A stretch of 64,000 nucleotides of DNA from Anthoceros angustus (GCA_010909165.1 VJWM01000151.1:550248-614247); one strand, 5' to 3'. Positions 38,700 to 61,727 are shown, counted from the stretch's first letter. Notes: generated by a model from the sequence alone, not told the origin. Translations and numbers: made by a program.

Positions 38700-41600
38700 G
38701 GATGGGTAATGAGAGATGCTCTTTCCACCCCAAGCCCGAGTGAAACATTTGTAGCGAGCGATGTGTGGATTCGGTGATTCAAAAAGGCGGGCATGTGGGG
38801 TTCCATTGTCCAAAAGCGATAGCGAGGTAGTGATGGACTTGAAAACCATCTTTGCAACAAGCTCGTGTGCAAACTCGCAAGGCAAACTTGCAAGAGCAGC
38901 GTATCGTTATCGAGGATGGGGAGGCGGAGCAAGAAGCGTTTTGCGTCACTAGTGGATGTGGACATCGCGGCGAAACCTAAGGAGAAGGTCATCACACATA
39001 TCATGGGAACTGGGCGCATTCGGTGTTGTTTGCAAGCATTCCGGAGAGTTTATTGCATAGGTTCCAAGCGGTATGAGGAGTTGAAGGCCAGAGTATTGTG
39101 CAATGCTCCATGGGACGGAGCCAGACTGAATCCTCGGCAACCCTCGTCGCATGCACAGGGAGCTGTTGCATGGATGGATTCCACTTTTCAATTCATGTCG
39201 GAAAGGCGCGAGCGTCGATGTTTTTCACATGCCCGATACATTTTCCAAGTTGGAAATATGGGCCCAGTACCGACGGATATGGCACGGTCCTCCATGAAGT
39301 TCGTCTCCTATGCGTATTTCTTAACCCTGTGGAGAAACAACTTTCCGAAGGTCCGGATACCAAAATCAAACAGGTTTTCTACTTGTTCTCTGTGCGAGGG
39401 CCTCAAGCGCACTATTCGCAACACATCTGGCAAGGCAGATCAAGGTTTGTTCCTTTAATCACAAGGCGAATCAAGTTTGGGGGAAATTCGAATGCTGTTC
39501 GTTGACATGTTGCCGGCATGGTAGGGACCGTGTTTATCAATCTGGTTTATGGGCGCCGTCATGCCCACACCAATGTTGATAACATGTGGGCGCTGGCATG
39601 CCGGCACCATCGTGCTTGCAATGGCAGGGTAGGCGTCCGCAAGCTGACACATGCGTGCATGATGTTTGGAGGAAGGCGCCGGCATGCCGGTGCCTATGTA
39701 ACCATAGCTCCGGTTACAAAGGCGCCGGCATGCCGGCGCCTATGCCCATAGATATGGTTACATAGGCGCCGGCATGCGGCGCCTATGCCCATAGCTCCGG
39801 TTACAAAGGCGGCATGCGGCGCCTATGTACATAGCTCAGGTGCGGGCGCCGGCATGCCGCGCCTATGTATAGCTACGGGTGCGGGCGCCGGCATGCGGCG
39901 CCTATGTAACCATAGCTCCGGTTACAAAGGCGGCATGCCGGCGCCTATGTTCATACCACGGTTTTGCGAAACCGTCATGACCCGACCTATGTCCGTAGCA
40001 ATGGTTATGCGGGCGCCGGCATATGTCCATACATCGGTTTATGCGGGCATGACCCGACCTATGCCGGCAATATATGTCGGCGCCGCATGCGGCGCCTATG
40101 GGCATATATTGTTCCCCATGGGTATAGTGCATGGTCGCAATACATGGTCGCCATACATCCGGTGCCTTCACCTTAGTCCTTGCATGCGGTGTCTGTAACC
40201 ATAGCTCCGGTTACAAGGCGGCATGCGGCGCCTATATATAGATATGGTTACATAGGCGCCGGCATGCGGCGCCTATATATAGATATGGTTACATAGGCGC
40301 ATGCGGCGCCTATGTATAGCTACGGGTGCGGGCGCCGGCATGCGCCTATGTATAGCTACGGGTGCGGGCGCCGGCATGACGGCGCCTTTGTGCGTACTTT
40401 GCTCCTATTACATAGGCGACGGCATACCGGTGCCTATGTTCATACCACGGTTTTTGCAGGCACCGTCATGACCCGACCTATGTCCGTAGCAATGGTTATG
40501 CAGGCGCCGGCATGCCAGCGCCTATGTCCATACATCGGTTTATGCAGGCACCGGCATGACCCGACCTATGCCGGCAATATATGTCGGCGCCGACACGCTG
40601 GCGCCTATGGGCATATATTGTTCCCCATGGGTATAGTGCATGGTCTGCAATACATGGTCGCCATACATCCGGTGCCTTCACCTTAGTCCTTGCATGCGTG
40701 CATGCGGCGCCTATGTCCATACATCGGTTTATGTGCCCGTACTCATGTAGGAGTTTTGGTCAAATGTGGTGGAGATCGTTGTGCAATACTCCTTGTTTTG
40801 ACATGTGCATATTTTTCGGTTGTGCGGTATATGAAGGGGCACTGGCGTCTCATCGACTACGTCTGAGCAGAGGGACAAAGCGCAAAGCATCGCTCTAAAA
40901 GTTATGCTCAACCTCACAAGTACATGCTTCTGGCTATCGATGGTATGGACCAAAAGAAGACCGAGCTGCCCCATTTTATTCGATACCCAAAAGATTTAGC
41001 GGATAGTTCACTTATTAATGTTCATGTAGTGGGTGTATGGTGCATAATTACACTTTCAAGGCGAGGCGTATTTGCATTATGCCAATTTGGAATGACGCGA
41101 ATCTAACTATCAACATAATTCAAGATGTCATATTTTCATATGAAGGGGTGCTTCCAAAAGTGCTTTATCTCCAGCTTGACAATACATGCCGGGAGAACAA
41201 AAATCAGTTGTTATTCGCATACCTAAATATGCTCGTTGACCTTCAAGTGTTTGTGAAAGTGAAGGTTGGTTTCCTTCTGGTTGGTCACACACATGATCAG
41301 GTAGATCAAATGTTTTCTTGTTTCTCGAAGCTTCTGAGACACAAAGAGGCTTTTACAATAGATACACTGGCGGACATTCTGACAGCAGCATTCACTCCAA
41401 AACCGGAAGTGAAGATTATAACGGAAGTAGCGGACTTTCGTTCATATGTATGGCCGATCAGGAAAGGAGCAAGAGGATATGCATACAAGGCGGCAGTGAA
41501 ACAGCTGAACAACCTTTCCTTCCAACATCAGTTCAAAATCACACGGGAAGAACGGCAAGACCGTGGCCACGTTACTGTTGTTCGCAGCAAGCAGTATTCC

Positions 41601-42503
41601 ACTTCACCAGTCTGGGAATCAGAAGATGGTTTAGAATTTTTGAACTTCGTTCCCACCATTGCAGTTGGTCCAGCTCCGCTTATGGCTTTGAAAGCGAAAG
41701 ACAAAAAGGGGCAAGATGGTGGTCTGTCGCCATCAGAAGGTGTGAAGCACTTGAAGAATGGGTTATTGAACTTGAGGACATACATAACGGCGGCAGAGAG
41801 AGTGTGGTGGAGGTTGTTTTGGATTGATCAAGAGGGAATCGCCCTTATTGTGGAGAACAACATAGCTCTTGTGCTAAAACAGCCATGGAGATGGTACAAT
41901 AGAGCGGAGGCAGAGGCGAACTTGCCTCCGCTCCAAGTCCCTGAAGAGGTTGTCCTCGACGAAGCATTACTCAGAGAGGTACCCCAACGCGATATGTATT
42001 TGGGGGCATATCAGAATATTGGTCGCCAACAGCAACAAATTGAAAAAATGAATGGGGATATCAAGGAGATACGGAAAGGAATGTTCATCGCTACTCCATG
42101 TGCGGAGGCGCACATACAGGCTTTTGGATTGGGAAGGTGGACAGTGGACTTTAATTGTGAGAAGCCTTCGCTTATGGTCCACTATGAATCGAGCACACCG
42201 ATGCGTTTGAAGGAAATATGTTGAAGAATTTTTGTTCGGGGGACGCCTTGAGGACATGGGAAGCAGGTGGGAAAAAGAGGATTACCAAAGAACATCCAAC
42301 GGTTGTTTGTTGACAAGACTATAATCTTCTATTATGGATTCAACTTGAATGGAAGGAAACACTTGTATGCTTCAGATAAGAAGGCCATTCGTGAAAAACT
42401 AAATCAGCTTCGCCCTTTTCTGCAACCAGGAGAGGACGATAGCGACCAGGAAGCTGATGACGGAGGTCCTATATTGGATGAAGGAATTGAGTCGGCGAGG
42501 TGA
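38700..42503 (+). CDS. DDE-type transposase (DUF7869-like motifs), interrupted by a repeat-filled intron/insert (~39445-40820) and several frameshifts
   Basis: N-part CLQAFRRVYCIG...AVAWMDSTF...FLTLWRNNFPKVRIPKSNRFSTCSLC. Core KYMLLAIDGMDQKK...LYLQLDNTCRENKN...VGFLLVGHTHDQVDQMFS. These motifs are typical of a widespread eukaryotic DNA-transposon-associated family. Confidence 0.8.
39590..40730. repeat. Array of GC-rich palindromic units (GGCGCCGGCATGCCGGCGCC) with a ~490-bp higher-order direct repeat
   Basis: Perfect 22-bp palindrome at 39720-39741 plus many degenerate copies; 39940-40200 repeats at 40430-40700. Confidence 0.9.
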
Positions 42504-43299
42504 AATTGTCGCGGATGTTTGAAAGGGCCAAACTGCGAGAACATGCCCTTGCAAAATAGGCGAGCATGGTTGAGTAGTAGATGTTCACAATTATATAGTT
42601 CTCTATGGGACTCACCCTATTAGGGAGCAGCGCCTACTTTATTCTTGCCGCTCATTAATACGATGTTATCAATTCAAACCGTGCACAAACGGACACAGAA
42701 ACGAAAGTGTCACCCACATATGCTCTTTGTCGTACTGTCCCAAGGCCTAAGGTTAATTAATATGCCCATGAACTCGGCAGTAAAATGCAGTTGTTGCTTC
42801 TTGCTATCGCGCTAACCGCGCGAGATGGGAATGGATAGAAGTTCATCTCTGTACACAGGGTGCGGGGAGTGGGTGGGCGCCGGCATGCCGGCGCCCACAG
42901 ACTACGTGCCTTGTATACGACCAGCCACAATAAAATTCTGGGAAAAAACAACCGGCCTGGCTTGATGTTGCATTGGCGTGTGCGAGAATACAACCAAGGC
43001 CGTACACCTCATCCACGTTACAAATCTGCTCCATGCTCAACACTTCATGCATATCCATATATTTCCCAAACCACTCATCATGCGTGTAAAAGTTGCATAT
43101 TACAAAGCATAGCAGCCCTCTGCAGCCTACATGGACTTAAATATGGGCATGTTTTGCGGCAAAATTGCATTCGCCTTCCAACAAATCCCTTTGTTTGGCC
43201 ACCCCATGTCATGAACTCATGTTCAAGAACATGTGCCACCCTTTTTTCCCTCTTACTTTCAAACAAATAGTCCAAGAAGGGTTTGAGTGCCCATGTTGC

Positions 43300-43800
43300 C
43301 GCCGGTTATTTGTATAAAGTGGGAAAACGCCGCTTCCTGTTTATTACGACGGAAAGAACATTATGGTGTTATGAGGTGGAGAGAGAGGCCTGTCACCGTC
43401 AGTAGATCCTTCCAGACCATCATCAGCAGCGGAGAAATGACCAACGCCATCCATTGATGCATTCTCATTAAGGTCAGCATTAGTTGTTTCTTCCCCTTCC
43501 TCATGGTGAGAAGTAGCTGAAGATTCTAGGTGGGCTTCGGACTCACCATCAGAAAACGGATAATCAGCAAAAACAGCGGAAGAAGAATCAACATGTGGAG
43601 GACTAGGTGTGCTATCTTCTGAATTTTCAATTTCAGTAAACTCACGTGAAGGAGAAAAATGCAGATATGAATCGTCGAATTCTACAGTGTTAGGAGAATG
43701 TAGTTAACAAAAGGTGACACTACGGGCAAGTGTGAGTTTCCTGGTCTTAGGGTCATACAGCTTGTAGGCTTAACACCATAAACCTTCAAGAGGGGGAATA
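43300..43800 (-). mobile_element. Copia integrase C-terminal (SH3-like) fragment
   Basis: Minus-strand peptide YGVK(A)YKLYDPKTRKLTLARSVTF at ~43715-43785. Confidence 0.6.
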
Positions 43801-44216
43801 TACAAACCCTCTTCGGTTGCTGGTGGACCCTCTTGACATAGATCACACCTTTCTGGAAACTATGTTTTTTTCACGTTTGTGACGTATGTCCACCCTTGTC
43901 CGATGGATCCCATGTTGGAAACAACGATTTACGCAATTCCATGTGTGCATGTAATAAACGGACGCCGGCTGGCCGGCGATAGGACCCTCGTCAAAGCAAT
44001 GGTCCACAATGTAGGAAGGAAAATTAAAATTCCACCACTTGAAGACGTTTTTTTTACTGCAAACTATGCGAGTGGCCAACCTTGAGCATATACCTCTATC
44101 AGGCCACAAAACTTATCGTTAAATACCGCCGACGAAATATAAGGCGTCTACAATGGATCATTAGGATGGCTCAAGCTGCATTCGTCTCACACTGTCACAT
44201 CAGTCTAAGACAACCG

Positions 44217-46262
44217 CTAGGTTTCTAATCGCTCTACTTCTTCGTCTTCAAATTATCGTTTTCTTCCAAGGCCTTCGTCTTCGTTCACATCACACTTGGG
44301 GTGGTCCTGTGAGGCGGTGCCACATCATCCAACGTTTGCTGCCCATCTTCCAAAAGTTCACCTGTTGTCGTCTGCAACCTCCTGGCACTCAATGAAACAA
44401 CTTGTGCTTTCAGACTATCTTTTTCGCTGATACATACCTCCTTTGCCCAGAACTATGAAGGTCCTCTGCGATGCGGTTGAAATGTAAGCTCTTCCTCTGC
44501 ATCTGGAAGGACCTCATAACCATGTATTCGTTGAGAAATGTACCCTGCACACCTCAAATCGCCTCAAGCGCAATGCGATTCGTCCACTGAGGACTGCAGC
44601 AAGTGTGGTGGTTCCACTGCCCGAACATGCATCAAGAACCCAGTCCCCTTCCTTTGAGAAGGTCCTTATAAGTTTCATCGAAGACCAAGTGGGCGTTGAT
44701 AAGGGCATACCACAAGTTTGTCATTGGGCGGTAGACTGTTTCTTCACCACCGATGGCGTGTCCTATAGTGAGCCTCCCATTGTTGAACGTCCGTGCATAG
44801 CAACGACATAGGAGCTCTATCCTTTGTGCTTGTGTCTTTCAAACACCATCCGACGGTGATGTATTCCACAGTCTCAAACCCGCCTCTGTCATTTTGCATG
44901 TTGGTCTTATCCCATATGAAGGATACCAATCCGCCTTTCCCTGTCCATGTCCGCATGGATTCCCTGACGGTATGGGCTTCTTCAACCCTATGCATGACTA
45001 TAATGCGGAACTCTTCAATTGTTGTCTTTTCCTCAAAGCTCTGAAACACTGTTCGCATCATTGCCATGTCCACCCGCTTATCCATAGGGCCAATGTCAAA
45101 CCCACGAGGAACGTCCATCACTAGAAGCATGTACCCCCTCGTCCTCAGAAACCCCCGCATGTCAAGAATATTTCTTGTCTCCACCTGGTATTGCACCTGT
45201 TTGTCACTGGAAGGCACGTTAAATATGTTAAGACCTTCTTCCAGGTCCTTATCAGCCAAAGCCCTTTGCTCGTTTTCAAGACCTTTCCAGTTGTTGACTT
45301 CAAATATAAAATGGCGGAAGTCATCCGGCAGCTTCGCCAAAACCTCGACGTCCTTTAGTTGCTGCAAGTTTAAAACCAAACCACATCGTCAGTGCCCCAT
45401 GGACAGAAAGAGGCGCCCTCCTAATAGAGGCCGACACCTCCACAATGGCGCCTTGATGGGGGCGGGCGGCGCCTCCACAATGGATGCCGATGAAGGGCGC
45501 GGCCCCGGCCCTCCACAATGGATGCCGATGAAGGCGGCGGTGAGCGCGCCCTCCATGTGCGTGAGGCACGGATGGGAGGCGGCGGCCCGGCTCCTCCCAC
45601 CATGCCTCCCGCACATGGAGGCGCCGGCCGCCTCCACCAAGGTGTCCATTGTGGAGGCGCCGCCACAATGCCAATGACACGAACTCTTCAATAGAAATGG
45701 CTTTCTCACCTTGCCGGCAAATGCTGTTTGAAACCGTGCCAGCACACTATCTGTTGCATGATGGGGGTACTCTTCCCGCACCTCCTCGAACGATGAGCAC
45801 CCAAGATGTTTCGCCATCGCCACTTGGATGATATGAAATTTCTTCCAGAGGCTGATATCATCATCCATTCCCTTGAGATCAATAAGCCCTGCAAGAACCT
45901 TTTCCGTTGCTGATATTAGTATCTGTTGCCCACATTCCCCTGACGGTATTTCTTGAAACGATTTCCAAGGCTTCGCAAGCATATCCTTCGGCTTCACATA
46001 TGCAGCATCGATTTTCTTGGACTCTTCGGTGACCTTCCGTTTTCCTTTGCCTTTCTTGCTCGTTCCTACTGCGACATGTTTCTTTTGCTCCGGAAGCTCC
46101 CCGGCTTCCCACTTTGAAAAACTCTTGTCCACATTCTCCCATACTCTGCCCTCCTGCTTTGCAATACACAAGATATGAGTCCTGTTGTCCACTTTGTTCT
46201 GCTTGTACACATCGTCCTCTCGCCCCTCATCGTCGTGAATCAACCCTAGTGTGGTGACCACA
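44217..46262 (-). CDS. 3' part of the ParB-linker-DNA amino-methyltransferase (beta class, N6_N4_Mtase-like) gene; GT-AG intron 45709-45362
   Basis: Helical linker (WENVDKSFSKWEAGEL...HLGCSSFEEVREEYP) splices in phase 0 (AFAGK|QLKDVEV). Then motif-IV-like LLVMDVPRGF (45101-45115), FIWDK, VEYITVGW, CPYQRPLGL and motif I GDWVLDACSGSGTTTLAAVLSGR..IALE. Motif IV before motif I indicates the beta class. A few frameshifts. Confidence 0.8.
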
Positions 46263-49200
46263 TGGGTACTCAGACCCCCCTCGAAAAGGAGTGTTTTTTT
46301 TTGTTTTGTGTTTAGGTTGTGAGAATCGTGTGGAGTTGGGATGTGAAGTAGGTTAGGAAATAAGAAAAGCCTACTAGAGCCTAGTAGGAGGAAGAGAGTC
46401 TAGTCCCGATCCCGGATGTAACCTTGAGGGTTGGTCGCTCGGCCGGTTAACGCGTGCTAGGCCGCAACAGGACTGCTATGACAAAGAACCGACTGGAGCC
46501 TGCTATGGTAGCAACCAAGTCGGAGTTATTTTCCGATAAATGGAAAACCTATTTGAGTGAAATCATTGGAAATACCCGAACGGAAGTAACGGGGTCCTAT
46601 TTCCAATGGAAGAGACAAGGAATATTTGCAGGCGAAGGCGGCGCCACACCTCAAGCTCGGAGCACTGACGAGGAGGAAACGCGCCGCGAATCGGAGGCAG
46701 TCACGAGCGCTCGAGAGGGCCGAATCGGGTGGGATGGCGGTGGCGGAGGCGGTGTTTGAAAGAAGGAAGCCCAAAGAGGAGTCGAGGAAGAGGCCATCTC
46801 CGGTGGCGGAGGCGGCGAACGGACGGTGGAGAACGCTGGGCGCGCAATGCAAGGGGCGCGCCGAAATTCGCCCAATGGCGGGTGGGGAGTAATCGGGCCG
46901 TGTAGCTCACGGAGAAGACTAGGCGGGCGCGTGCGGCGACGGGTACCGCAAGGAGCTAAGGAGAGCAGTGGATAGGCGGGGGCCGAGGAATGCAGAAAGG
47001 GAAGTGTGCAGGCGGGCGGTGGCACGCACTGGGAGGTCGCGACAAGGGCAAGACAAAGCGCACTGTGGGTCACTCAACTGGTTGCAGGATACATCCTCAA
47101 GCCTCTGCAGGTACACCAAGCCTCACACAACCGAGGTAGGCCGGAGATCGGCTGAGCGAGGCAAAGTGTATGGCCGAGGATAAGAACGGGGTTTCAATTC
47201 GAGGGGTGCCGGTGTCAAGTCGGACACGTAAACGGCCGAAGATAGGGGTCAGAATAATAAATCGTGGTCTGACGCGCTTCCAAGTGCTGAGTGAATTGTG
47301 CAGACACCCCCATCGTGAAGTTGGAAGCCGAGCTAAGGAGAGTGTGGGGGATCCTCCACCAACAAGCCGAGCTAAGCGGAAATTTCGGATGGGAAGTCGG
47401 CCCCGAGGAGACCGACATGAACAAGGGAGAAAAGTGGGAAGTGCTGTGGTGGTGCATCGCGATAGCCGGACTCCTTACTGTAAACTCGAGCCACGTCACG
47501 GTCGGAAGCATGGCCCCTAAGAAGACCACTCCGGTGGCCATTGAGGCCATTACCAGCATCAATGGCCCAACATGGGGCAATCGGAGAGTGAAGGCGGGTC
47601 TTTGGTGGCTAAGCATCACTTGTCCTTCATGGACAAAAGTGGTGCTACAATAGCCTGTTGGTTTGGGAGTGCAGACATGAGGGAGAAGGCCACGAGGGAA
47701 GGCAACACGAGAACCAACCCCGCACTGGAATATTCAGTTGTTCCAGTGTCTATGAGAGGCTCAAGAGGAATGTGGTGGAATAATCATTGATCCTTTCGAG
47801 CCATCTCCCAAAAGTCGCAGGAGGCACAAGCCGCCATTGCTCCCACATTGTCTAGGGTGGAGAATGGCTGGGTCACCAACAAGTTAGACCCGAGCCGGAT
47901 TAGCCAGTGGATCCTGTGCTCTCACTCACTAAGAAGCTAGAGCACATTCTTGACCATTTTCTTGTCTTTCTCTATGAGGTGGTGAGAGGGTCCAAGATAG
48001 ATTGGGCTAGGATGTTCTATGACACAAGATGTGGAGAGGGACCACTTGACCCTACCATCACCCAGCCCCTCATTCTATCTCCCTTCTTAATCCACGTTTT
48101 GACCATGCCAAGTTGCCGGAGGGATAGAGATGGTCTCATTTTCCATGCCCGGAGGCCGGTGTTTGAAAGAAGGAAGCCCAAAGAGGAGTCGAGGAAGAGG
48201 CCATCTCCATGGGAGTGAAGATGAGAAGTCCAAGTGTCCATGAAGAGGAATGTGGCGGTTGCTAAGGTATCACCGGTTGCTAACAAAGCAACCGGAGTTG
48301 CTAAGACTCCAACAGCACCAAGAGAGGTCGGCCGAGCAACAGGGGACTCCAACCACTCCTAGAGCCACAAGAGCACGACCGGGAACTCACCGGATGTAAG
48401 GTGATAAAGGAAAGGCCGAGCAAAGACTGCTCAGGAGCGTGGGAAGCCACAGTCAACAGGAGGAATCACCAACCTTGGGCACGGCCGAGACCCCGAGAAA
48501 GTCACTACTGCTCAAGGGGTGACCTCAAGTATACCCCTAAGTGGTCGCAGGGAGAGCCGCGCCAGACAGGAAGGAGGAACCCATCCCCGAGGTTTGGGGC
48601 CTAACATCACCCTACAAGAGCCGGTCTCAAATGGCACGCACTAGGTGAGATGGAGGACCGATAGCTCTGGTCCTCTCTTTGTTAGGTTTACAGCGCAGAA
48701 ACAGGGAGAGCAAAGGAGCTCCGTGGAATGAAGGTGGAGAAGGAGGTCTTGAGGGACGCCTAGGTAGCATGGAAGCGGAATTAAGGAAGGTCCGAGAAGA
48801 GTTGCAGAAGACCACTCCGGTGGCCATTGAGGCCATTACCAGTCAATGGCCCAACATGGGGCCTTTGGAGAGTGAAGGCGGGTCTTTGGTGGCTAAGCAT
48901 CACTTGTCCTTCATGGACAAAAGTGGTGCTACAATAGCCCTGCGTTGGTTTGGGAGTGTCACGGGGCACATGAGGAGAAGGCCACGGGAAGGCAACACGA
49001 GAACCAACCCCGCACTGGAATATTCAGTTGTTCAGGGCATATGAGGCTGAAGAGGAATGTGGTGGAATAATCATTGATCCTTTCGAGCCATCTCCCAAAA
49101 TTGCGAGGCTGCGCCATTGCTCCCACATTGTCTAGGGTGGAGAATGGGGTCACCAACAAGTTAGACCACAGGCTGGCCGGATTAGCCAAGTGGATCCTGC

Positions 49201-52200
49201 TCTCGGCTCACTAGAAGCTAGAGCACATTCTTGACCATTTTCTTGTCTTTCTCTATGAGGTGGTGAGAGGGTCCAAGATAGATTGGGCTAGGATGTTCTA
49301 TGACACATGCGAGAGGGACCACTTGACCCTACCATCAGTCCTCGCTCTATCTCCCTTCTTAATCCACGTTTTGACCATGCCAAGTTCTTTGGAGGGATAG
49401 AGATGGTCTCGACCTTCCATGCAGGCGGTGTTTGAAAGAAGGAAGCCCAAAGAGGAGTCGGAGGAAGAGGCCATCTCCGGTGGCGGGAGTGAGGATGAGA
49501 AGTCAAGTGTCCATGAAGAGGAATGTGGCGGTTGCTAAGGTATCGCGGTTGCTAACAAGCGGAGTTGCTAAGACTCAACAGGCACCAAGAGGGGTGAGCA
49601 ACAGGGGACTCCAACCACTCCTAGAGCCACAAGAGCACGACTGGGAACTCACACAGCGGAAAGGCAGGAAGGCGGCACCGTTCCGCGAGAGTGGCGGGAA
49701 GCCACAGTCAGGAGGAATCGGCCCAACCTTTGGGCAGAGTGACCGAGAAAGTCACTACTGTTCAAGGGTGACCCTCAAGTATACCGGAAGTGGTCGCGAG
49801 TCGATTCGCCCGAGATAGGAAGGAGGAACCCATCCCAGTGGGGTTTGGGGCCTAACATCACCCTACAGCTGGTCTCACTGCTATGGCACGCACTAGGGGT
49901 GAGATGGAGGACCGATAGCTCGGTCCTCTCTCTTTGTTAGGTTCTGGTGCACAGAGGCGGCTAAGGAGCTCCGTGGAATGAAGCGAAGGAGGTCTTGGAG
50001 GGCGCCTAGGTAGCATGGAAGCGGAATTAAGGAAGGTCCGAGAAGAGTTGCGTGGAAGACCAAGGATCGAAACCCTCATGGTTCACCTCCTGACGCACAA
50101 AGCACCATAGGGGAGCCGCACGTCATCTCGATGCGCAAGTTCAGCCGAAACTGGATACTACCGGGCCAAGAAGGAGAGGGACGAGGCAAGGAAAGGTTGG
50201 AAAGAGGCCAAGAGGGCTGTGATTGCAAGGAGAGCCACCGTGGAAGATGCGGAGCCTCCATGGAAGAATCTGTCGAGTTAGCACACCGAGGAGGTTGCTA
50301 AGCAAGCAAGCCGCTAAGGAAGCAACAACTCAGACCTGTTGCTAAGGGAGCAACAGCTCCAAGACCGAGCTACAACAAGGAAGAAGGGGCAATGGAGGAG
50401 GACAACAGCTGGGGGAGCGGTAAGCACCGCCTAAGAAGTCTAACTTCCCAATGGTGCATTAGATTGAGGATGCTTATCAAGATAACCATGTGCCCGGATT
50501 CTCCTTGGGAGAGAAGATTGTCTCCGAAAGTTTATGTTGTTGTGGGCACAGGACATGGAGGTACTTGATCCATGCCTTGACGGCACGGATCCTACCTATG
50601 GGTTGGATTCTTAAGGAGGAAACTCTCACCGACCCATCCAGATTCAAGAGCTCACCGAGGAGGAGTACTGCATCATGCGGCGAGCACAAGAGAGAGAGGA
50701 GTCCAGCTGAGGAGGTAGAGATTTTATGGGAGAGATTGCCCAACCAGCCAAGAGGGAGGAGAGCAAGAGGAGAACATGGGGCTAGGCCTAGGAGGCCTGT
50801 GAGAGGTAATAGGGGTAAGTGGCCAAATAGCTAAAGGCCCATGTGTTATAGATCAAATCTTATCCTCTCTCATAGTGGATGTAATTGATAGATAGGCCTC
50901 TAGGATTGGTAGGCTAAGACCGATTGGTATTTTTTGGCAAGCGCCCAAGCCGCTTTGTAATGATCTTGGGTATAAGAGGCACTCTGATGAAATGTAAGCA
51001 ATGTTGGCCTAAGTCTTGTGTTTAATGAGCACGGGGTTTGGGAGGGTTCCAGATCCAAAGGTTGTAAGCCTAGGCACCGCTCCTCCCAGGGGCCAAGAAG
51101 ACTACTGTTGCCCAGATCCGTGTGCCGATCCGCAAGAGTGGTGGAAAGCAAGGAGGGAGCCTTGGTCTCCTTGGAGGGAGTCCTCAAGGTCAAGAGGAAG
51201 GGGTCGGGAAGCCGGGGAGGCTGTCCCTCCTTTACTCATTCTCTGCAGTTTGTCTAGTACTCACCTTGTGTTTAAGTTTTTCAGAGTGTCGAAGGTCGCG
51301 GGAGAGAAGAAGACAAGGCGGGGAGCCGGTGTGTGTGAAGGGAAGGTTGAAGTGAGTTGGAGGCCTGTGGGCTTGTGTTTGGAAAATGAGAGGGAAAAGT
51401 GAACTGTGAGAGAAGTGGAGAATGCTGGACATGGAGAGTTGCTGATTGGCTGTTTGAGAGGAGTAAGAAGGACTGGAGAAGTCTGTAAGTGATGTTTGTG
51501 TCAAGAAGAGAGTCGGAGTGGAGGTTGAAGATCCGTGAGTGGATGAGATGGAATGATTGGGAGGTAGTGAACAAGTATTTTGAGAGTTGGTGAAGTGTCA
51601 AGGTCTGGATGAGAACCTTGTAAGGACTGGAGAGGAGCTGAGTCGAAGTGGAGATTGAATGGGGCGTGAGGTGTGAGAACAAGGAGAGTTGAAGAGAGTT
51701 CTGGGGAAACTTGGAGAGTGTGGGGATCTTGGGTATAAGAGGCACCTCAAGGACTGTGAGAGAGCTGGAGAGGTCTGTATGGAGCTGGAAGGTGAGCTGA
51801 AAGGCTGGAGAGGCAAGGAAGTCTCAAGAAGTGCAAGAGTGAGAGGAGGGGGAGTTATGAGAGCAGTAATCCTGATTGGTGGATCTAACTTTGTGGATGA
51901 GTAAGAGAGAGAGAGAGAGAGAGAGAGGTCAGCTTATCCACTTGGATCCCGACTGGGACCCACCTATTAATAGCCGACTGATCCCAAGGTGGACCCCTCT
52001 AGAAATAGAGGTTGCTAAGTTAGCAACCGGTCTCCGCTGCCGGGTGGCATCGAGGTCAGGCGTGGCTAAGATAGCCAGTGTCCGAGTGTTGTTAGGTAGT
52101 TCGTCTCAGAATCGCTAGATGTTTTGGTGTGTCCGTGTTGGTTGGATTGGCTATGTTTTGGTTGTCTTGACACGAAATCACTCCCTTGGGAACGAATCTC

Positions 52201-52264
52201 AAGTCTACAACGATAAAGAGGGTAAATGTGGCCTCTTTGTGACCACTTGGTTTAGAAAATCACT
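46263..52264. mobile_element. Unclassified 6.0-kb insertion with internal ~1.3-kb duplications and retroelement accessory-ORF-like peptides
   Basis: Begins with TG and is flanked by a CCACA direct repeat (46258-46262 / 52265-52269); removing it rejoins the ParB and linker ORFs in frame. Module TGTTTGAAAGAAGGAAGCCCAAAGAGGAG recurs at ~46753, ~48160 and ~49429. No RT/integrase seen. Confidence 0.7.
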
Positions 52265-53058
52265 CCACACCTAGCAGTTTGTACAGATTAAACTTCCATG
52301 CCATGGTCATCTGCACTCCGTCCCGTTTTGCTATAATCAATTCGTCCCTCAAATATCTGACTTGCTCAATGAAATTCATTTTCTTCCTCCTGTCAGACAA
52401 CACATTGTGATCTGTTGCAAGAATACGCATCTCCTGCATTGTCAGACCACAATACACATGGGCCTCCACATACTGAAAGCGAGTCTTCCCGGGACATATA
52501 TCTGCCAAGTGCTTCATTGCTGCATAAGTGTGGTTGCCTCCAAGAACCCTCCTGATGTATTTTTTTGCCCTAAACTTGTCCCAATCTAGTTTGCTCAGGT
52601 CTTCACACTCTGCAGGGTCAATCATACATAACAGAGGTAATACGCCTTCTTCGATCCTGCCCTTCGAAATCATGCGTGCTAAGTAATTTGTCCATGGTTC
52701 GTCAACCCTCCATATCTGAGCATCCGGTGTGAGGTGTGATGCTGGCCGAAGGTTCTCCAATTTTACAAGAACTGTCTCCAAAACAACCTTTTTTGAATAG
52801 GCCGATTCCCTGATGTGAGTTAGTCCCGAATAGCATGTGCTAACCGCTCCTTGTCCGTTGATACATGAACAGATGGTATGTCCTCTAGCAACTCCTGCGC
52901 CGTTTGCATGTTTTTTCCTTTTTTTCTCCCTGGTCCACTAGCCAGGTCCACGCTCTGTGAACGACTCCTCTCGCCTGATGCTTGGCCCTCTAATGCCTTC
53001 CTTTTTCCTTTGCTGCTTTTATTCCCACTCACATCCTGCATGGAGGCAAGGAGAGGAG
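52265..53058 (-). CDS. 5' part of the same gene: ParB/Srx-like domain
   Basis: RRVLGGNHTYAAMKHL...VEAHVYCGLTMQEMRILATDHN...KMNFIEQVRYLR resembles the ParB/sulfiredoxin xxGNHR core. Preceded, across a 1-nt frameshift at ~52820, by a basic N-terminus MQDVSGNKSSKGKRK (ATG 53041). Confidence 0.7.
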
Positions 53059-53059
53059 C

Positions 53060-56000
53060 TGTAAACGTTCTGGATAGAACGGAGACGGCGAGAGCAGAAC
53101 AAAAATGATTGAATTAATTAACAAAAGGGTCTCATATGTCTTTTATATCTAAACCTAATCACTTAACTGTTATGTCCAATGATCACATACGGTTTATAAA
53201 CAATAACCCAAGCGAGTGTAGGTTAACCAATATGTGCGTATGCGTATTAATTCTAACACTCCTCTTAAACTTCACGAGCTTAAAAACGGTATCACATGGC
53301 TCTGAACTCCTCGCCACCCAATCGAACTTGAGAGCAAACGTGCCAGAGCCCTTAAGATGGCGGTCGTCCTTCCTGCCCACCGACATCATCATCCAGCTTC
53401 ATCCATCCAGCCTCCCCGCCGTGCACCGCCATGTCAACAACAAGCGAGATGAGCCGCGGTCAATCATGACGGCCAAGGGAAGAGACTCGCTTCGCAGAGG
53501 CGCCACCACCAGCTAGGAAGAGCCCTAGACAAGGGCCCCTTCCGACGATCGACGAGTCACACCGCAAGCCCATAAAGCGAGGCACAAGATGGAGGGCCGA
53601 TGCTGGAGAAAAAGCAATCGAGGAGGCTGCAGCCCCCGACTCGGGACGAACTTGAGAGGAGATGAGCTTGATTGGCCGCCTGCATGCTGGCGACCGGCAA
53701 TCGTATCAAAGAGTCCTCCGGGTTGCTACTGCGAGTGGCGATTAAATTCACGTGAGGCTTCATCCGTCCTACGGCCTTTGATCCTCGTGTGGCTCTCACA
53801 TACCGATGCAAAACATGTGCCTGTGGATGCTGTAGGAAGTAAGGGCTGGCGGTCTTTGGAGGCCGGTGAGCTAAATCAAGCTATAGGAGTATCAATCACC
53901 AATTAGAAAGCATAGGCTCCCACCCCACACCCACGGATACCTGCACTCTATTTTGCGTCCTTGAACATGTAACTCCGTTGCGTGAGTCCAAGTCCCTCCA
54001 TATGCCGATAATGTCTCGATTTGGGCGGGGCCTTGGTCAACACATCTCGTTTCTCATCCGTGTGAACATAATCGAAACAAAGACGCTCCACCACATTTAC
54101 GATATAATGGTGTCAGATCTCATGTGTTTAGTTCGGGCAGGAAACCTAGGGTTTGCAACAAGAGCAAGGCATATATTATCACACAAAGAGGAGTTGGCCT
54201 CATCTGCTGCTGGCCCAAGTCTGCAAGGAAAGTCCTTTCCCACTCTGCCTCTTTTGATGCATCACCAAGCTCAGAAGCCTGTGACAGGAGGGTATAGAGG
54301 CTTGCTTTTTACAACTCCAATTGATGGCTGCATTCGCAAGAAGGAAACAGTATGTCGAAAGGCTTTTCCTGCTATCACTATCGATGCCCAATCGGCATGG
54401 GTAACCTTTAAGGTGCTGCTCTGCCAACTCATTATAGATAGTCCATAACATTGGGTGCCCTTAAGGTACTAATACTCTTTTGGCGGCTACCCAATGTCAC
54501 ACCTGGGTTTCTGTGAATTGGGAGAGTGTGCTCACGGATGAATATCCGGAAAGTGCCACTCACAAAAGATAAGGCTTCCTATCAAGTGATGTCTCAGAGG
54601 CACATCTGCCATTTCCCTTTCTCTCACTTTGATTGTGACATTGCAGCTTGTGAGTTTAACTCCCATGGTCAAGGTGGCCGGTCGGGTCGTGCTGGTCTAG
54701 CTTAAACTTGGTCAAGATATCTTGGATGTCTTGTCTTGGTGTATCACTATCAGATGCCCAATCGGCATCAGTGAATCCCTTTAAGGTAAGCTGTTCTTGC
54801 CCACTGCATTTATAGCATAGTCCATAACATTGGGTGCCCTTAAGGTAACGGAATACTCTTTTGGCAGCTACCCAATGCGCGCGACCAGGGTTTTCCAGGA
54901 ATTGGGAGAGTGTGCTCACAGAGTACTGAATATCTGGACGAGTCCAGTTACCTACAAAGATAAGGCTTCCTATCGCATGTCTGTAGGGCACATCTGCCAT
55001 TTCCCTTTTCTCTGCCTCAGATTGTGGACATTGCAGGCTTGTGAGTTTAACTCCCATGGCTGAGGGTGTAGTTGCTGGTCGTGCTTGGTCTAGCTTAAAC
55101 TTGGTCAAGATATCTTGGATGTACTGGTACTGGTGTATCATTAGAAGTCCCTCAGATCTCACACGAAGTAGCTGGATACCTAGGCAAAATTTCAGTTCTC
55201 CTATATCCTTCATTTCGTATTTGCTGCTCAACATGGATTTCACTTCTTCAGCTTGCTTGCCGGGCCGGGCATTGGATCACGCCATCCACGAAGGGCGAGC
55301 ACCACATATCTTAGCCTCTCAGAGCTCGTAAACATAGCTTGATCGCTTGAATGATGCTAAGGAGGTAAGCGTGGATGTTCAAGTACTAGACTTCCAGGCA
55401 CTCATGAGAAGGTCTAACAATGTTGCACACTTCTGGGATGATTTTTATCTATCATTCCCCTCGCCGCCTATAGTAGGTCCTCGTCTAGTGCTCCATAGAG
55501 TAGCCGTGCACACGTCCATTTGATACAATTCCAGGTTATGTTTTGCAGCTAAAGCTAGAATCATTCGATTGATTGTGATCTCAATGCGGAGAGAAGGTTT
55601 CGGATTACTAATCACCGCAGTGAAACTCTCACACAAGTCCTTGTATCCGCTATCTCACCTTTGTCATTCAACTTTAATTTGAATACCCACTTACAAGAGA
55701 TGGGTTTCACGTGCAAGTCCACCAATTTCCGGTATGGTTTTGACGAGGCTATTGAACTCGTCATCAACATAAATTTCCATTGTCTTTTCGTGGCTTGAAA
55801 AAGCCTCTTTTAGCGATTTAGGTTCCAAGTCAATTGTGGTTGATGCGCATGTATAGCTTCAGCATAAGATGTGCGGAAATCGATGGACTGGTATCTAGGC
55901 TCTTTCCATTCTTCAGGAGGTGGCCTGTACCTGCTGGAACGTCTTGGAGGAGGTCATCCCATGAGTTCTTCCTCACCGTCCAAAGATCGACATCAAGAGC

Positions 56001-59000
56001 ATCAGGTAAGCCTCCTGGATCATCAGCCTGTGCTGCATCTTCCTGGAAATTCTGATCGTGAAAGTTATCATCATTGCCAGGAACGTTTACAACATCGTCT
56101 ACATCGCCTTGTGCCTGGTCAGGTCCTGCTCATGTGGGATCGGATGACGTGGATCGAGGTTGCCGGAGCCTCACTTGCTCGGGTTAGGCTCGTCACCGGA
56201 AGTCAAATTCAGATGTTTCTTCTTCCAGATTTTCTCCCTCAGCAGCTGGATTGACTCCCTCAGAGTCCAAATGGGACTGAAATCCTGGAGTAGCAGGGCG
56301 TGTAGGCTCAATGAAGGTGACAGACCTGGCCAGAACAGATGTCTGTGAGGTAGGATTGTACAATTTGTATGCCTTGGAAGTTTCACTATAACCAACAAAG
56401 ATGAGGGCTTGAGCACGAGGGTCTAACTTCCGCCTCTTTTCTTCAGGTATAAGTGCAAAAGCACGGGATCCGAAGACGTGGCAAGCTTGGTTTCTGTTCC
56501 ACATGGCTTCAAAAGGTGTCTTCAACGGGACGAGTGTAAATGTGAGTACATATGTAGCAAAGAACAATAGCCCCTACCCCAAGTTTTGAGGTAATCCAGT
56601 ACATGCTACGTGTCATGGATAAGAGGGTTTGGTTCTTGTGCCACCATTCCGTGGATGGCGTGTATGGAAAAATCAAGCCTCAGACACCATGTTCAGAATT
56701 AAGAATTGTATTCAATATCGCCCCAATACTTGATCGAATTTCCTCGTCTAGTGCTCCATAGAGGTATGCACCGTCCATTTGATACAATTCGAGGTTATGT
56801 TTTGCTAAAGCTAGAATCATTCGATTGATTGTGATCTCACGGGGAGAAGGTTTCTTGGTAGTCTAATCCCTCGATGTGTGAAACCCACAGCGACAAGTCT
56901 AAGTGTCACAGCTATCTCCACATTCAACTTTAATTTGAATACCCACTTACAAGAGATGGGTTTCTGTCGGTGACAGTCCACCAATTTCCGGTATGGTTTT
57001 GCGAGGCTATTGAACTCGTCATCAACATAAATTTCCATTGTCTTTTGGGGCTTGAAAAAGCCTCTTTTGATTTAGGTTCCAAGTCAATTGTGGTTGATGC
57101 GCATGTATAGCTTGACATAAGATGTCTGAAATCGATGGTGTATCTAGGCTCTTTCCATTCTTGAGGTGGCATTACTGCTTTGGGCGTCTTGGAGGAGGTC
57201 ATCTCTGTAGGGGTTCTTCCTCAATTTCAGTCCAATGCACATCAAGAGCATCGTAAGCCTCCGGATCATCGGCTTCTTTGCATCTTCTGGGTGATCGTGA
57301 AAGTTATCATCATTGAGGCGTTTACAACATCGTCTACATCGCCTTGTGCACAGTCGGTCCTTCATGTGGATGCGATGAGCCGATGGGGTTTGCTGGGTAT
57401 CACTTGCTACTGCAGGTTGGGGAGCTGCGTCGTGCAGGAAGTCAAATTCGGATGTTTCTTCTTCGATTTTCTCCCTCGGTTGGACTCCTCGAGTCCAAAT
57501 GGGTGAAATCCGGAGTAGCGGTGTAGGCTCAATGAAGGTAGCGGACACGGCAGGCAATTTATGTGAGGTAGGATTGTACAATTTGTATGCCTTGGAAGTT
57601 TCACTATAACCAACAAAGATGAGGGCTTGAGCACGAGGGTCTAACCGCCTCTTCTTGGTATAAATGCAAAAGCACGGGATCGAAGACCCGTAAGTCGACA
57701 AGCGTTTCTATTCCATGGCTTCAAAAGGTGTCTTCAGCGGAAGAGCTTGCTGAGTACATATGTGACAACAATAGCTCGGCGAAGTTTTGAGGTAATCCGG
57801 CAGAAGCATGCTACGTGTCATGGATAAGAGGGTTTGGTTCTTGCGTTCGGCCACACCATTCTTTGTGGCGTGTATGGAGCGATCAGCGCCTCATACCATG
57901 AGTTCAAAATTACGTGCCATTATCAGTCCTTAAATACTTGACTGAATTTCACGTCAGGTCTGATTTAAACCCGATCCTGAATGTGTGAAGGTATCACTCT
58001 TGAGTTGTAAAGGGTACGTCCATGTATACCGTGAGTAATCATCCGTGATACTTAGGTAATACAAAGCACCAGAGTGGTACTTGATTTTCCCCGAAGATAC
58101 AGTGCGTTCGAGGACAGCCTTTGCTCAGTATGACGCCGGTGTGGAAATGGACGATCATGGCTATGATGCAAGCCTCACGGAAGGAGGTCCTTAAAACATC
58201 GAGGTAAAGGTTCCTTATGACATTCTCAGAGACATATCTACCAACAGGCCGTGCACGGATGTGTGAGGCGGGCATGCCAGACCGCTAATTTTGTGTCTGT
58301 GGATGCTAAACCCGCTACACCTTATGTGTGAAAATGTCCAGCTCGACAGAATTTTCGAATGCCTCAAGGCGTACAAGGATGGGTCGATTGAAAAGTGCAT
58401 GTGTCATCTGCTGACCTTCATGTGGTAGGTCCTCTGCGCATTAGTTTGCTAAGGGGAGGAGGTTCTTTGCCATTGGCACATGTGACATCCTCGTAGGGTC
58501 AATTGATCCATCATGAAGACGAACTTGCATATCTTGTCCTTGTATTTGCAAACTGGTCTTGTTTTGTTCGCCACCCGAAGCACTTTTGATGTGGATCAAG
58601 GCGTGAATCGAGTGAAGAACTCGATTTTGTCCTTGCATATGTGTGAGGTTGGAATCAAGATACGCTCCCTCCTTTGTGCGAGCAAGAGATATGCTGAGGA
58701 TCTTCACGGTGGTTTGGTGTCACCGATTGTATCTTTAATGGTGACATTCGAAGGCTCTTAGTAACGTTGAGGTTCACCAATTTCTTCTTCTTACACTCTC
58801 GGGCCCAATGACCAGCACCCGCCACACCGGTCTCTTGGAGGATGACGACCCATCGTTTGCCACTTGTCGGAGGTCGGGTTTCTAACTTGTTTTGTTAGGT
58901 CGAAAGCAGAGCTAACACCTTTTACGCTTTGTTCCTAGGTACACTAGCGAATTCAAACGGATCGCTCCTCTTATACAAAGCACCAATCACATCTTCACAT

Positions 59001-61727
59001 GTGATTGTGCTTGCGAACCTCCAAACTCCACTAGGTTTGAGTCCATTCGTTGTGACGAAAGCTTGATAAGATGGGGGCAGGCTAGAAAGTAACCTTGCCT
59101 GCCGACTGTATCTTTCTCCGGGCCAAGAGGTAATTTGTGCTCGTAGTTGACGAAATCGGCTTGTATGTGCCGAGATCTTGTCTCCCTCCCTCATCTTCAA
59201 TGTAGTCTCTCAGATGGCATGTAGACTCATCATGTTTTGACTTTTGTATGTCCTCTCCGGTGATCGCATGTAGCAGACCGTGAGATGTTCGACATCGGCA
59301 CAAGGTCCACGCCCGTGCCATTGATGGCACATCTGTCTGACATCATGAAGGGAACTTGATGTCCTTGTATTTACAAAGCGGTCTTGTTTTGTTTCACCAG
59401 CACTTTTGATGTGGTGGCGTGAATCGAGAGTGAAACTGATTTTGTCCTTGCATATGTGTGAGGTTGCGCCGGAATCAAGATACGCTCCCTCCTTTTTATG
59501 CGCAGGCAAGACATACGGTGAGGATCTTCACCGGTGGTTTGGTGTCACCTGATTGTCTGTCTTTAATGGTGACATTCGCAGCGCTCTTAGTAACGTTGAG
59601 GTTCACCAATTTCTTCTTCTTACACTCTCGCCCAATGACCAGCAATTCCCAATTACAATTCAGTCTCTTGGAGGATGACCGTCGGGTTTGCCACTTCTTT
59701 GGAGTCGTGTTGCCTTGGACTTGTTTTTGTTAGGTCGAAAGCTAACACCTTTTACGCTTTGTTCCTAGGTACACTAGCGAATTCAAACGGGGCCTCCTCT
59801 TGGTACAAAGCACCAATCACATCTTCACATGTGATTGTGCTTGCGAACCTCCGGCTCCACTAGGTTTGACAGTCCATTACGTATTGTAAGCTTGATAAGA
59901 TGGGGCGGGCTAGAAAGTAACCTTGCCGCCACCGTGACTCATCTTTTCGCCATCAGGTAATTTGTGCTCGTAGTTGGAAATCGGCTTGTATGTGCCGAGA
60001 TCTTGTCTCCCTCCCTCATCTTCAATGTAATATGCGCACATCATATGTAGACTCATCATGTTTTGACTTTTGTATGTCCTCTCCAGCTGATCCCATATGT
60101 CAGCGGCATCTGTGAGATGTTCGACATCTGGCACAAGGTCCACGTCCAGGCCATTGATTAGGAAACCAGCAATCTTTGTGTCGAGTCCACTTGGCAATGT
60201 CATCACCGCCGCTTGTTTACTCCAAAGTGGCGAGGGAAGTTTCGTAAGTTCTATCCACAATGTTCCAGACACCTTGCGCCAACAGGATGGTCTTGATGCG
60301 AACACGCCAAACAGGATATCGGTTCCCATTAAAACGGTCTTTCTCCTTTAGCTCAGAGGTAAAGGTTGGACCAGACATTTTTATGGGTTTGGGATTCGGC
60401 TTTGGCTTGGGTCTGATGTTAAACTGACCAAATTGTTGAGCTAGTGCATCGATTTGTGCCGTGGACATGCAGATGTAACAGAACACCTGAAAGCTATGGC
60501 TTCAAGATGATTCTGGTATACCTAAATGTCCTGCAACATTCATGTTAGCTCATGCATCACGTTTTGATATCAAACTGACCAAGAGTGCGAGGGATGATGT
60601 GGGGGTAGCGGAGGAGGAGAGGATAGAGACTTATCCTAGCCTTCTCTTGCTAACCTCCTCATCAAAGTCTTCCCAAGGTTTACTTTAACACTTGGCCAAA
60701 GCGTTATGCGGGTTAGTTTAGAGAAAGGAAGGTAATGACGTTTCATTTCTTGACCTAAGCCATGTCCCGTCAGATAAAAGTAACTCTTCTAAAGAACCTA
60801 TCAACGTGCAAGGGACACAATGCCGTGAAGGGGCACCAACTGTTGCGCGATCTGATCCCGATGGCCTCTGTCGTGCAGTTTCCTGTTGTCTGAAATTTCG
60901 TGTTTAGAGCCATCACCGAGGAGTAATTGGTAGGTGAATTCTCCTCGCCTCTTGGGTTTGCACAATGTTCCTCGTGTTGCAATGTGTGATCACACAATTG
61001 GCGTGATAGAAGCCACAAGATTCTTGATTATTTGTAGCTTCGGCCCGAAACCCAAGGATTTGATCACCGCTGGGGTTCCGCCTTCGATCGTCAACTCGTC
61101 TTCAAGACTTCCGGTTTGACAAACGTATGAGTCCTCTCCACACGATACGGTGTGGCCAAGGTCTGCCGCAGGTTCTGGCTAGTTTGGTGGAATTGAATTT
61201 CTATTTTTTGCCCATCACGCCGTGTTGCTGTGGTTCTAGTTTGGAAGAGAGAAGGGGCACCACCTTCGTGGCGTAGATTGTGATTCCGCCCCTTTGTTGA
61301 CAACGGTTTATATACCCATCCGTGATTGATTTTTGCGCACTTTGAGCCTTAATCTCCCACTAGAATGGGTTTCCAAAACGCCTAAGGTACCGGTAGTCGC
61401 CTGTGATATAGGTCTAGCACTCATCCGATGGTACAAAGGAATTGAGACTTGTCGCCCACGACGATCTCTCCTGCTTGTGCCTTCTGATTACGTATTCCTG
61501 CACGCGCCTAGGCATTTGCATGGAAGTTGCCGGGATGCGCAGGGCCTGACACCATGTAAACGCTCGATAGAACGAGACCAGAGGGTAACAAAATGATTGA
61601 ATTGATTAACAAAAGGGTCTCATATGTCTTTTATATCTAAACCTAATCACAACCAAGTTAAGGTCCAATGATCACATACCAAGCTAAACAATAACCTAAG
61701 CTAGTGAAGAACCAATATGTAATGTAT
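53060..61727 (-). mobile_element. Ty1/copia element with short LTRs (53060-53258; 61555-~61727 truncated) and multiply duplicated internal domains
   Basis: The LTR copies share TGTAAACG...TGATTGAATT...AACAAAAGGGTCTCATATGTC. PPT AAGAGGAG at 53259-53266; PBS-like TGGTGTCAG at 61546-61554 (minus). RT/RH peptides include YRHAIGSLIF, GFTDADWASD, NWSCKKQ; INT LDPRAQALIFVGYSETSKAYKLYNP; PR YLDSGATSHI; gag FNGNRYPVWRVRIKTIL. Confidence 0.9.

Follow-up and report, generated by a model that had tools for sequence, protein, structure and literature searches.

That transposons encode proteins which bind and modify the element's own DNA has already been put forward in publications on brown, green and red algae. 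In the brown alga Ectocarpus, the element Sola1-1_Ec32 carries, opposite to the transposase strand, a gene for a 1104-amino-acid (aa) protein that combines ParB with an N4C/N6A methyltransferase, and its authors suggest that proteins of this kind bind to the transposon encoding them and modify it (Dinatale et al., Genome Biol 2025, PMC12477816). In the red alga Bostrychia, the accessory genes PAG2/PAG3 of a giant DNA transposon, Plavaka, encode proteins with a ParB-like domain and a putative N6-adenine methylase, and tandem inverted-repeat arrays beside the ParB gene have been proposed as binding sites (bioRxiv 10.1101/2025.02.11.637652). Among land plants, MpDN4MT1 of Marchantia, an enzyme with the motif TSPPY, writes N4-methylcytosine (4mC) in sperm (bioRxiv 10.1101/2021.02.12.428880), and Sola1 is listed for Physcomitrella (PMC9033089). 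According to Bao et al. (2009; cited in PMC3845634), Sola1 elements have a target site duplication (TSD) of 4 bp of the AWWT type. We found no paper describing a pairing of Sola1 with a ParB-methyltransferase gene in a land plant. Here we describe a locus within a 64,000-nucleotide (nt) stretch of Anthoceros angustus DNA (GCA_010909165.1, VJWM01000151.1:550248-614247; hereafter the window) at which a DUF7869 transposase gene and a gene for a ParB-like/methyltransferase protein lie next to each other, and which likely represents decayed remains of a Sola1-type transposon family carrying this second gene as cargo.

Results

Two convergent, spliced genes

The plus strand of the window contains a two-exon gene for a DUF7869 (putatively Sola1-type) DDD transposase. 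The minus strand contains a spliced gene whose product starts with a basic N-terminus and continues through a ParB-like domain and a linker into a β-class amino-methyltransferase (Table 1). An initial annotation of the sequence had proposed a DDE-type transposase and a convergent methyltransferase gene, and both genes are real. Their 3′ ends, which it had placed about 1.7 kb apart, are separated by ~1.7-1.95 kb in a tail-to-tail arrangement, and the repeat-filled intron or insert that it had noticed in either gene turned out to be a true GT-AG intron whose removal restores the reading frame.

Table 1. Coordinates of the features at the locus (positions within the window; a slash marks the splice junction; a dot, no strand assigned).
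Feature	Position	Strand	Evidence or remark
Transposase exon 1 (N-terminal region, including a Cys-rich stretch)	38916-39444	+	ATG, open reading frame, L005 alignment
Transposase intron, GT-AG, phase kept	39445-40836 (1.39 kb)	+	Splice sites CAAG/GTTTGT, TATGAAG/GG
Transposase exon 2, DUF7869 catalytic core and C-terminal part, pseudogene	40837-42503	+	PF25273, L006 alignment
Sequence downstream of transposase, repeated in genome	42504-43370	.	Candidate copy boundary ~43367-43370
Ty1/Copia polyprotein fragment, integrase C-terminal (YKLYDP...SRxVxF region)	43350-44200	-	Translation, tblastx
Methyltransferase exon, pseudogene	44453-45361	-	PF01555; alignment A1
348-nt GT-AG intron	45362-45709	-	AAG/GTGAG ... 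TTGCAG/CA; exons share frame
Linker exon, ParB-like to methyltransferase	45710-46245	-	38-47% identity to L006, L005, L001 linkers
6,025-nt GT-AG intron of methyltransferase gene	46246-52270	-	Splice sites CTAG/GTGTGG ... CACTAG/GG
Basic N-terminal part and ParB-like domain	52271-53041	-	ATG 53041; VLGGNH 52547-52530; L006 alignment; alignment A2
Copia remains within 177-bp direct repeat pair	53060-61721	-	Repeats 53060-53236, 61555-61721, 83% identical

Exon 1 of the transposase is 37% identical to the N-terminus of the transposase on L005, which together with L001 and L006 belongs to the contigs of sequencing run SRR33208241 and thus to another organism. Removal of the segment that follows yields an in-frame ...ADQ/GHWRLIDYV, and since splicing restores the frame we regard this segment as a true intron. 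Exon 2 matches the Pfam family PF25273 (DUF7869) with an E-value of 1.7e-44 and contains the motifs DGMDQ, LQLDNTCRENKN and GHTHDQVDQ. These are conserved in 11 relatives, in the general form DGMDQ / LDNTxRENKN / GHTHDxxDQ, and the three aspartates within them are kept across all 11, which is consistent with a DDD enzyme. The exon can be aligned to residues 1-529 of the L006 transposase, whose open reading frame (ORF) of 619 aa is unbroken, with the alignment being split over two frames. We noted an in-frame stop at 40864-40866, a frameshift at ~41031-41037 and further stops at ~42222-42251, in total three stops and one frameshift; the latter stops lie within coding sequence because the homologous L006 ORF is unbroken there. 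This transposase copy is a pseudogene. Within the window, there is no second copy of either the transposase or the methyltransferase gene, and neither the region left of the transposase nor the final 2.3 kb contains a partner gene.

On the minus strand, the N-terminal and ParB-like part shares 33% identity with residues 185-380 of the corresponding L006 protein, and removal of the long intron behind it joins ...YKLLG/LIHDDEG in frame, as in L006. This intron is swollen by an unclassified unit of 1.28 kb in ~2.6 tandem copies (46750-50062, blocks 86-100% identical). The unit is without a Pfam or Rfam match, none of the ORFs within the 6-kb intron has a Pfam match, and Rfam returned no match across 36-64 kb of the window. 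The shorter intron is crowded with GC-rich inverted repeats, including those termed I5 and I20. The methyltransferase exon encodes motif IV (DVPRGF, 45115-45098), followed by PYQRP and then by motif I (DACSGSGTT, 44633-44613). Here, too, the gene is broken: its N-terminal part contains a frameshift or small deletion with a stop at ~52820, while an alignment with the relatives P0044 and P0047 together with the nucleotide sequence places a stop at 44746-44744 after ...HRW, a 1-nt frameshift at ~44680 between PYQRPLGL and MKLIRTFSKEGDW, and a further frameshift with a stop at ~44565 just past motif I. With at least three frameshifts and two stops in total, the methyltransferase copy is a pseudogene as well, and no RNA run is among the runs listed as holding its exon. 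The notion of an active epigenetic module at this locus is thus not borne out, since both genes are dead.

The methyltransferase domain is of the β class and has a variant motif IV

The piece around motif I scores against PF01555 with an E-value of 6.9e-7 and 29.9 bits, the Pfam gathering cutoff being 26.7. Since motif IV lies upstream of motif I in the chain, which is the β-class order, we assign the domain to this class. When the methyltransferase exon was searched exhaustively with phmmer against 1.8 billion protein representatives, only six weak relatives were obtained, to which a profile search added one more (P0049); the ParB-like/methyltransferase family is almost absent from protein sets. 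The five relatives that were traced, among them P0043, P0044, P0047 and P0049, all stem from Logan contigs of SRR33208241. When compared to PDB sequences, the family profile matched M.RsrI (E=4.8e-8) and also M.MboIIA, CcrM, DpnA and the rotifer N4CMT, and through this profile the PYQRP...DACSGSGTT of the window aligns with HPTQKP...DFFAGSGVT of RsrI.

A structural search for an amino-methyltransferase fold had been set beforehand as a test of the proposal. For the intact relative P0044, AlphaFold gave a model whose core reaches a predicted local distance difference test score (pLDDT) of 80-90. Foldseek matched this model to CcrM (E=2.4e-12) and MboIIA (E=4.2e-11), the TM-scores on the target being 0.5-0.7. 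M1.HpyAVI, M.BceJIV, RsrI, PvuII and N4CMT were further top matches, with E-values between 1e-12 and 1e-8 overall. The search hence recovered the fold for this relative, which, as modelled, has the β-class fold seen in N6A/N4C amino-methyltransferases. By language model, the methyltransferase family has phage PF01555 proteins as its neighbours; among the structural neighbours of the best of these, fusion to ParB_N is frequent. The phage methylases that we fetched for comparison with the ParB-methyltransferase architecture lack ParB.

Alignment A1, comprising the window exon and six relatives, revealed that motif IV reads D-[LVI]-P-R-G-[LF] in six of the seven sequences (DVPRGF in the window, DLPRGL in five relatives) and DIPYGF in the remaining one. 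The canonical form (D/S/N)PP(Y/F/W) is absent from all seven. In the P0044 model the variant motif occupies the expected place of motif IV, namely the loop following the strand, and because it is conserved in all sequences of A1 it is a trait of the family rather than damage of the window copy. The domain keeps motif I, the site for binding S-adenosylmethionine (SAM), whereas methyl transfer to DNA is putative, since the family has D-[LVI]-P-[RY]-G at motif IV and not DPPY. The suggestion that the cargo writes 4mC or N6-methyladenine (6mA) is not supported for this locus; the catalytic motif is D-x-P-R-G instead of (D/S)PP(Y/F).

A putatively ParB-like N-terminal domain

Neither the window piece nor the L006 protein matched ParB_N or another member of its clan in Pfam at E<=1. 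No PDB sequence matched the ParB-like part, and the match to a ParB-like family of PHROG was insignificant (E=0.25). The AlphaFold model of this domain reached a pLDDT of 47.6, and Foldseek matches of so poor a model are meaningless. When the ParB/linker part of L006 was used as a protein query, one close relative was obtained. Alignment A2 contains a conserved VLGGNH(T/S) loop after a predicted strand, which resembles the GG-x-H-R loop of Srx/ParB. The language-model neighbours of the window and L006 domains, found independently of each other, are DUF3723, ParB_N and DUF6551 proteins (0.90-0.96). For both domains (window 52271-52781, minus strand; L006 3945-4559) the nearest named neighbours are DUF3723 proteins, at 0.94-0.96, with no similarity at the level of hidden Markov models (HMMs). 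DUF3723 is a conserved accessory gene of the fungal Starship giant transposons, and we treat this likeness as a lead only. Taken together, the conserved loop, the language-model neighbours and the published annotation speak for a ParB-like label, which itself could not be confirmed. Of the architecture proposed initially (ParB/Srx, linker, β-class methyltransferase), the order of domains and motifs stands, but the identity of the first domain does not stand beyond this.

The two gene families are linked in relatives

If the two genes were neighbours by accident, their homologues should not be expected to adjoin elsewhere. On L006, a DUF7869 transposase (minus strand, 56-1915) is positioned head-to-head with a ParB-like/linker/methyltransferase gene (plus strand, 3375-6752), and L005 has the same layout; L001 contains the ParB-like, linker and methyltransferase parts in a row and in a single orientation. 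As L005, L006 and the published Sola1-1_Ec32 of Ectocarpus (PMC12477816) pair the same genes, the two families are truly linked at the family level and not by chance. As to the check suggested initially, whether the genes co-occur convergently within shared terminal inverted repeats (TIRs) and TSDs, these relatives support the co-occurrence but not the orientation. That two unrelated genes merely met in a transposon nest is very improbable in view of this linkage, even though Copia elements and unclassified repeats are nested throughout the window and the DUF7869 transposases on the eukaryote-like contigs L003 (1022-2080) and L004 (10001-10783), from JGI metagenome 3300072920, lack a methyltransferase in the flanks read. 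These flanks cover 6.7-10 kb on most sides, and ~1 kb upstream in L003, and contain no ParB-methyltransferase gene, so that apparently not every member of the superfamily carries the cargo. Downstream on L005 we observed a Peptidase_C48 (Ulp1-like) ORF and a RecQ-type helicase fragment (11918-12892, 15394-15961), both being typical of other plant and algal DNA transposons.

Spacer, flanks and termini

The region between the two genes is not a plain intergenic stretch. The sequence from 42504 to 43367 is repeated elsewhere at ~97% identity, as seen from contigs of one low-coverage DNA run that match 42590-43367, and by the same run the greater part of 41-45.4 kb is repetitive. One of these contigs tracks the window to 43367 and then diverges, which marks a copy-specific breakpoint; the contigs measure ~200 bp and are too short to define termini. 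Beyond this point, the minus strand at ~43350-44200 reads YKLYDPKTRKLTLARSVTF..., the C-terminal part of a Copia integrase. By tblastx (E ~5e-4) this fragment is similar to the SH3_retrovirus region in each of the other two Copia elements of the window; its extent beyond 43677-43769 was judged by eye. Neither a long terminal repeat (LTR) nor a reverse transcriptase accompanies this fragment.

As already stated by the initial annotation, the window holds no element termini. Self-BLAST of the window and sensitive searches of 33-38.9, 42.4-44.6 and 61.5-64 kb revealed no TIR pair flanking the genes or within the spacer, the candidate end at 43351-43370 has no inverted partner in the window, and no TSD of the element was found. 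If the copy is truncated or rearranged, the missing TIRs say little about the family.

To the right of the methyltransferase gene, a Copia remnant starts 19 bp upstream of the ATG and contains RVT_2 and SH3_retrovirus ORFs at 54.2-57.7 kb. The 177-bp repeats that enclose it are putative LTRs, around which no TSD was seen. Internal duplications of this remnant lie at 54373-55140, 55478-57843 and 58535-60158. Apart from such Copia parts, the ORFs of both flanks have no Pfam family.

Further features of the window lie at a distance from the locus. A Copia element with long ORFs occupies 28000-33600 on the minus strand (RVT_2 30332-31567, E=8e-61; SH3_retrovirus 31932-32438; Pol_BBD 33149-33523). 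A tandem duplication of ~2 kb at 19845-23783 (19845-21835 and 21827-23783, 97% identity), each unit of which has a 350-bp self-complementary stretch (20231-20583, 22213-22560), is accompanied by a perfect 51-bp tandem array at 23884-24139. An ORF at 11354-11950 on the plus strand matches DUF26/Stress-antifung (PF01657, E=1.5e-9). It probably belongs to a cysteine-rich receptor-like gene of the host, and no other feature of the window points to a host of the land-plant type.

Palindrome arrays in the transposase intron and the spacer

The transposase intron is packed with arrays of the perfect palindrome GGCGCCGGCATGCCGGCGCC and of units of ~43 bp. The 14-bp core of this palindrome, GCCGGCATGCCGGC, is matched ten times across the window, where chance alone would give 0.13 matches; seven of them lie at 39592-40519 and eight between 39.59 and 42.89 kb. 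The spacer contains a perfect 20-bp palindrome at 42876-42895 and a degenerate copy at 43964. These palindromes, which are strongly over-represented and, within the window, confined to the element, are candidate binding or target sites of the cargo protein.

Discussion

Origin of the locus

We consider it likely that the locus represents the decayed remains of a Sola1-type transposon family with a ParB-like/methyltransferase cargo gene, in the form of two truncated copies or of one rearranged copy. The tail-to-tail layout would then not reflect the design of the family but two truncated copies lying end to end, or a rearrangement of one. We infer this from the convergent genes, the Copia fragment between them, the breakpoint at 43367 and the lack of shared termini, together with the head-to-head genes of the relatives that were checked. 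The locus sits inside a nest of Copia elements, and nothing in it is functional today.

Several points weigh against this interpretation. The identity of the ParB domain could not be confirmed, with profile searches being negative and the model poor. The amino-methyltransferase fold is demonstrated on the relative P0044 and not on the broken copy of the window, and the head-to-head layout was checked in another organism only, on L005 and L006. The assignment to Sola1, which we regard as putative, rests on the DUF7869 match in Pfam, the DDD-type motifs and the naming used in the Ectocarpus paper. Finally, the GCCGGCATGCCGGC palindrome arrays are absent from L005 and L006; if functional, they would therefore be specific to a lineage.

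Alternatively, the locus might be one single copy with two genes that are convergent by design, with termini outside 38.7-53.1 kb and with Copia elements and other repeats inserted later. The close spacing of the genes on opposite strands would fit such a copy, the spacer recurs in the genome with about the same depth as the genes do, and the transposase intron and the spacer (42876, and degenerate at 43964) have the family palindrome in common. Yet both loci that could be checked are head-to-head, an LTR-less Copia integrase fragment separates the 3′ ends, the contig of another copy diverges within the spacer, and no inverted repeats join 33-38.9 kb with 61.7-64 kb. We thus regard a single convergent copy, or a sub-family with convergent genes, as unlikely, and with it the initial view of the two genes as one cut-and-paste element, against which the verified head-to-head layout, the Copia fragment, the breakpoint and the lack of TIRs and TSD all speak. 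A domesticated host ParB-methyltransferase that writes 4mC or 6mA, as MpDN4MT1 does, is hardly credible: eukaryotes are documented to employ N4C methyltransferases of the bacterial type (bioRxiv 10.1101/2021.02.12.428880), but the gene of the window has its frameshifts and in-frame stops, D-x-P-R-G in place of TSPPY and no RNA run among those listed, and it sits in a transposon nest beside the transposase of a linked family.

A possible role of the protein in intact elements

Under our preferred reading of the locus as remains of a Sola1-type family, intact members elsewhere may still use their cargo. The N-terminal ParB-like domain would tether the protein to the DNA of its own element, and the C-terminal domain would bind SAM and modify nearby DNA (6mA/4mC) or at least clamp it; the methyltransferase domain might alternatively act as a non-catalytic DNA- and SAM-binding module. 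A private mark set in this way could serve self-recognition, the control of transposition or escape from silencing. Overall, we give this mechanism about even chances for intact members of the family. A more specific version, in which the ParB-like domain of intact plant members recognises the family's own GCCGGCATGCCGGC arrays (14-20 bp) kept in introns and the D-x-P-R-G enzyme sets a mark other than 5-methylcytosine (5mC) or clamps the DNA there, is a speculative extension that we think improbable. Such recognition might amount to a transposon-borne, ParB/parS-like self-marking, with a DNA-binding module that is maybe akin to the DUF3723 genes of Starships.

If intact copies work in this manner, a land-plant-type genome would host transposons equipped with a protein of their own that binds and modifies DNA. 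Such a protein could supply 6mA/4mC outside the 5mC machinery of the host and would parallel Dam-controlled bacterial transposons. The locus itself is dead and the idea has been published before for algae, which limits the value of the locus to a data point on host range, a conserved non-canonical motif IV and the palindrome arrays within introns.

Comparison with known systems

When compared to the bacterial enzymes CcrM, M.RsrI, M.MboIIA and M.PvuII, the family of the window shares the position of motif IV before motif I, the PxQKP and FxGSG(T/S) motifs and the overall fold. It differs from bacterial and phage β-class enzymes in a motif IV without the second proline and, in most cases, without the aromatic residue, in its long linker and spliceosomal introns, and in a ParB-like part that is missed by the ParB_N HMM. 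MpDN4MT1a/b and the N4CMT of bdelloid rotifers are likewise eukaryotic PF01555 genes of bacterial type, and the rotifer enzyme is among the fold matches; in contrast to the locus described here, they are working host genes with (S/T)SPPY and proven 4mC activity, without a ParB-like domain or a transposase partner. The Plavaka elements of Bostrychia belong to another transposase superfamily (Plavaka/CMC), and their ParB is fused to a 2-oxoglutarate (2OG) oxygenase and their methylase to SET, in separate proteins.

L005, L006 and L001 share with the window a three-part protein (on these contigs with VLGGNH, linker, DLPRGL and PYQKP...DGCSGSG) and a DUF7869 transposase, at 33-47% amino-acid identity. 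They are set apart by the head-to-head genes of L005 and L006, the unbroken transposase ORF of L006 and the lack of GCCGGCATGCCGGC arrays on both contigs. Sola1-1_Ec32, which we compared by its published description, has the same fusion and the same placement on opposite strands, whereas the locus of the window differs from this brown-algal element in its land-plant-type host, its dead and tail-to-tail genes and the DVPRGF motif IV. Given the tail-to-tail layout, the Copia fragment and the lack of termini, the two genes of the window may not belong to one element. Sola1-1_Ec32 is a large element with nested insertions whose transposase is often pseudogenised; nested insertions and a pseudogenised transposase are found at the locus described here as well.

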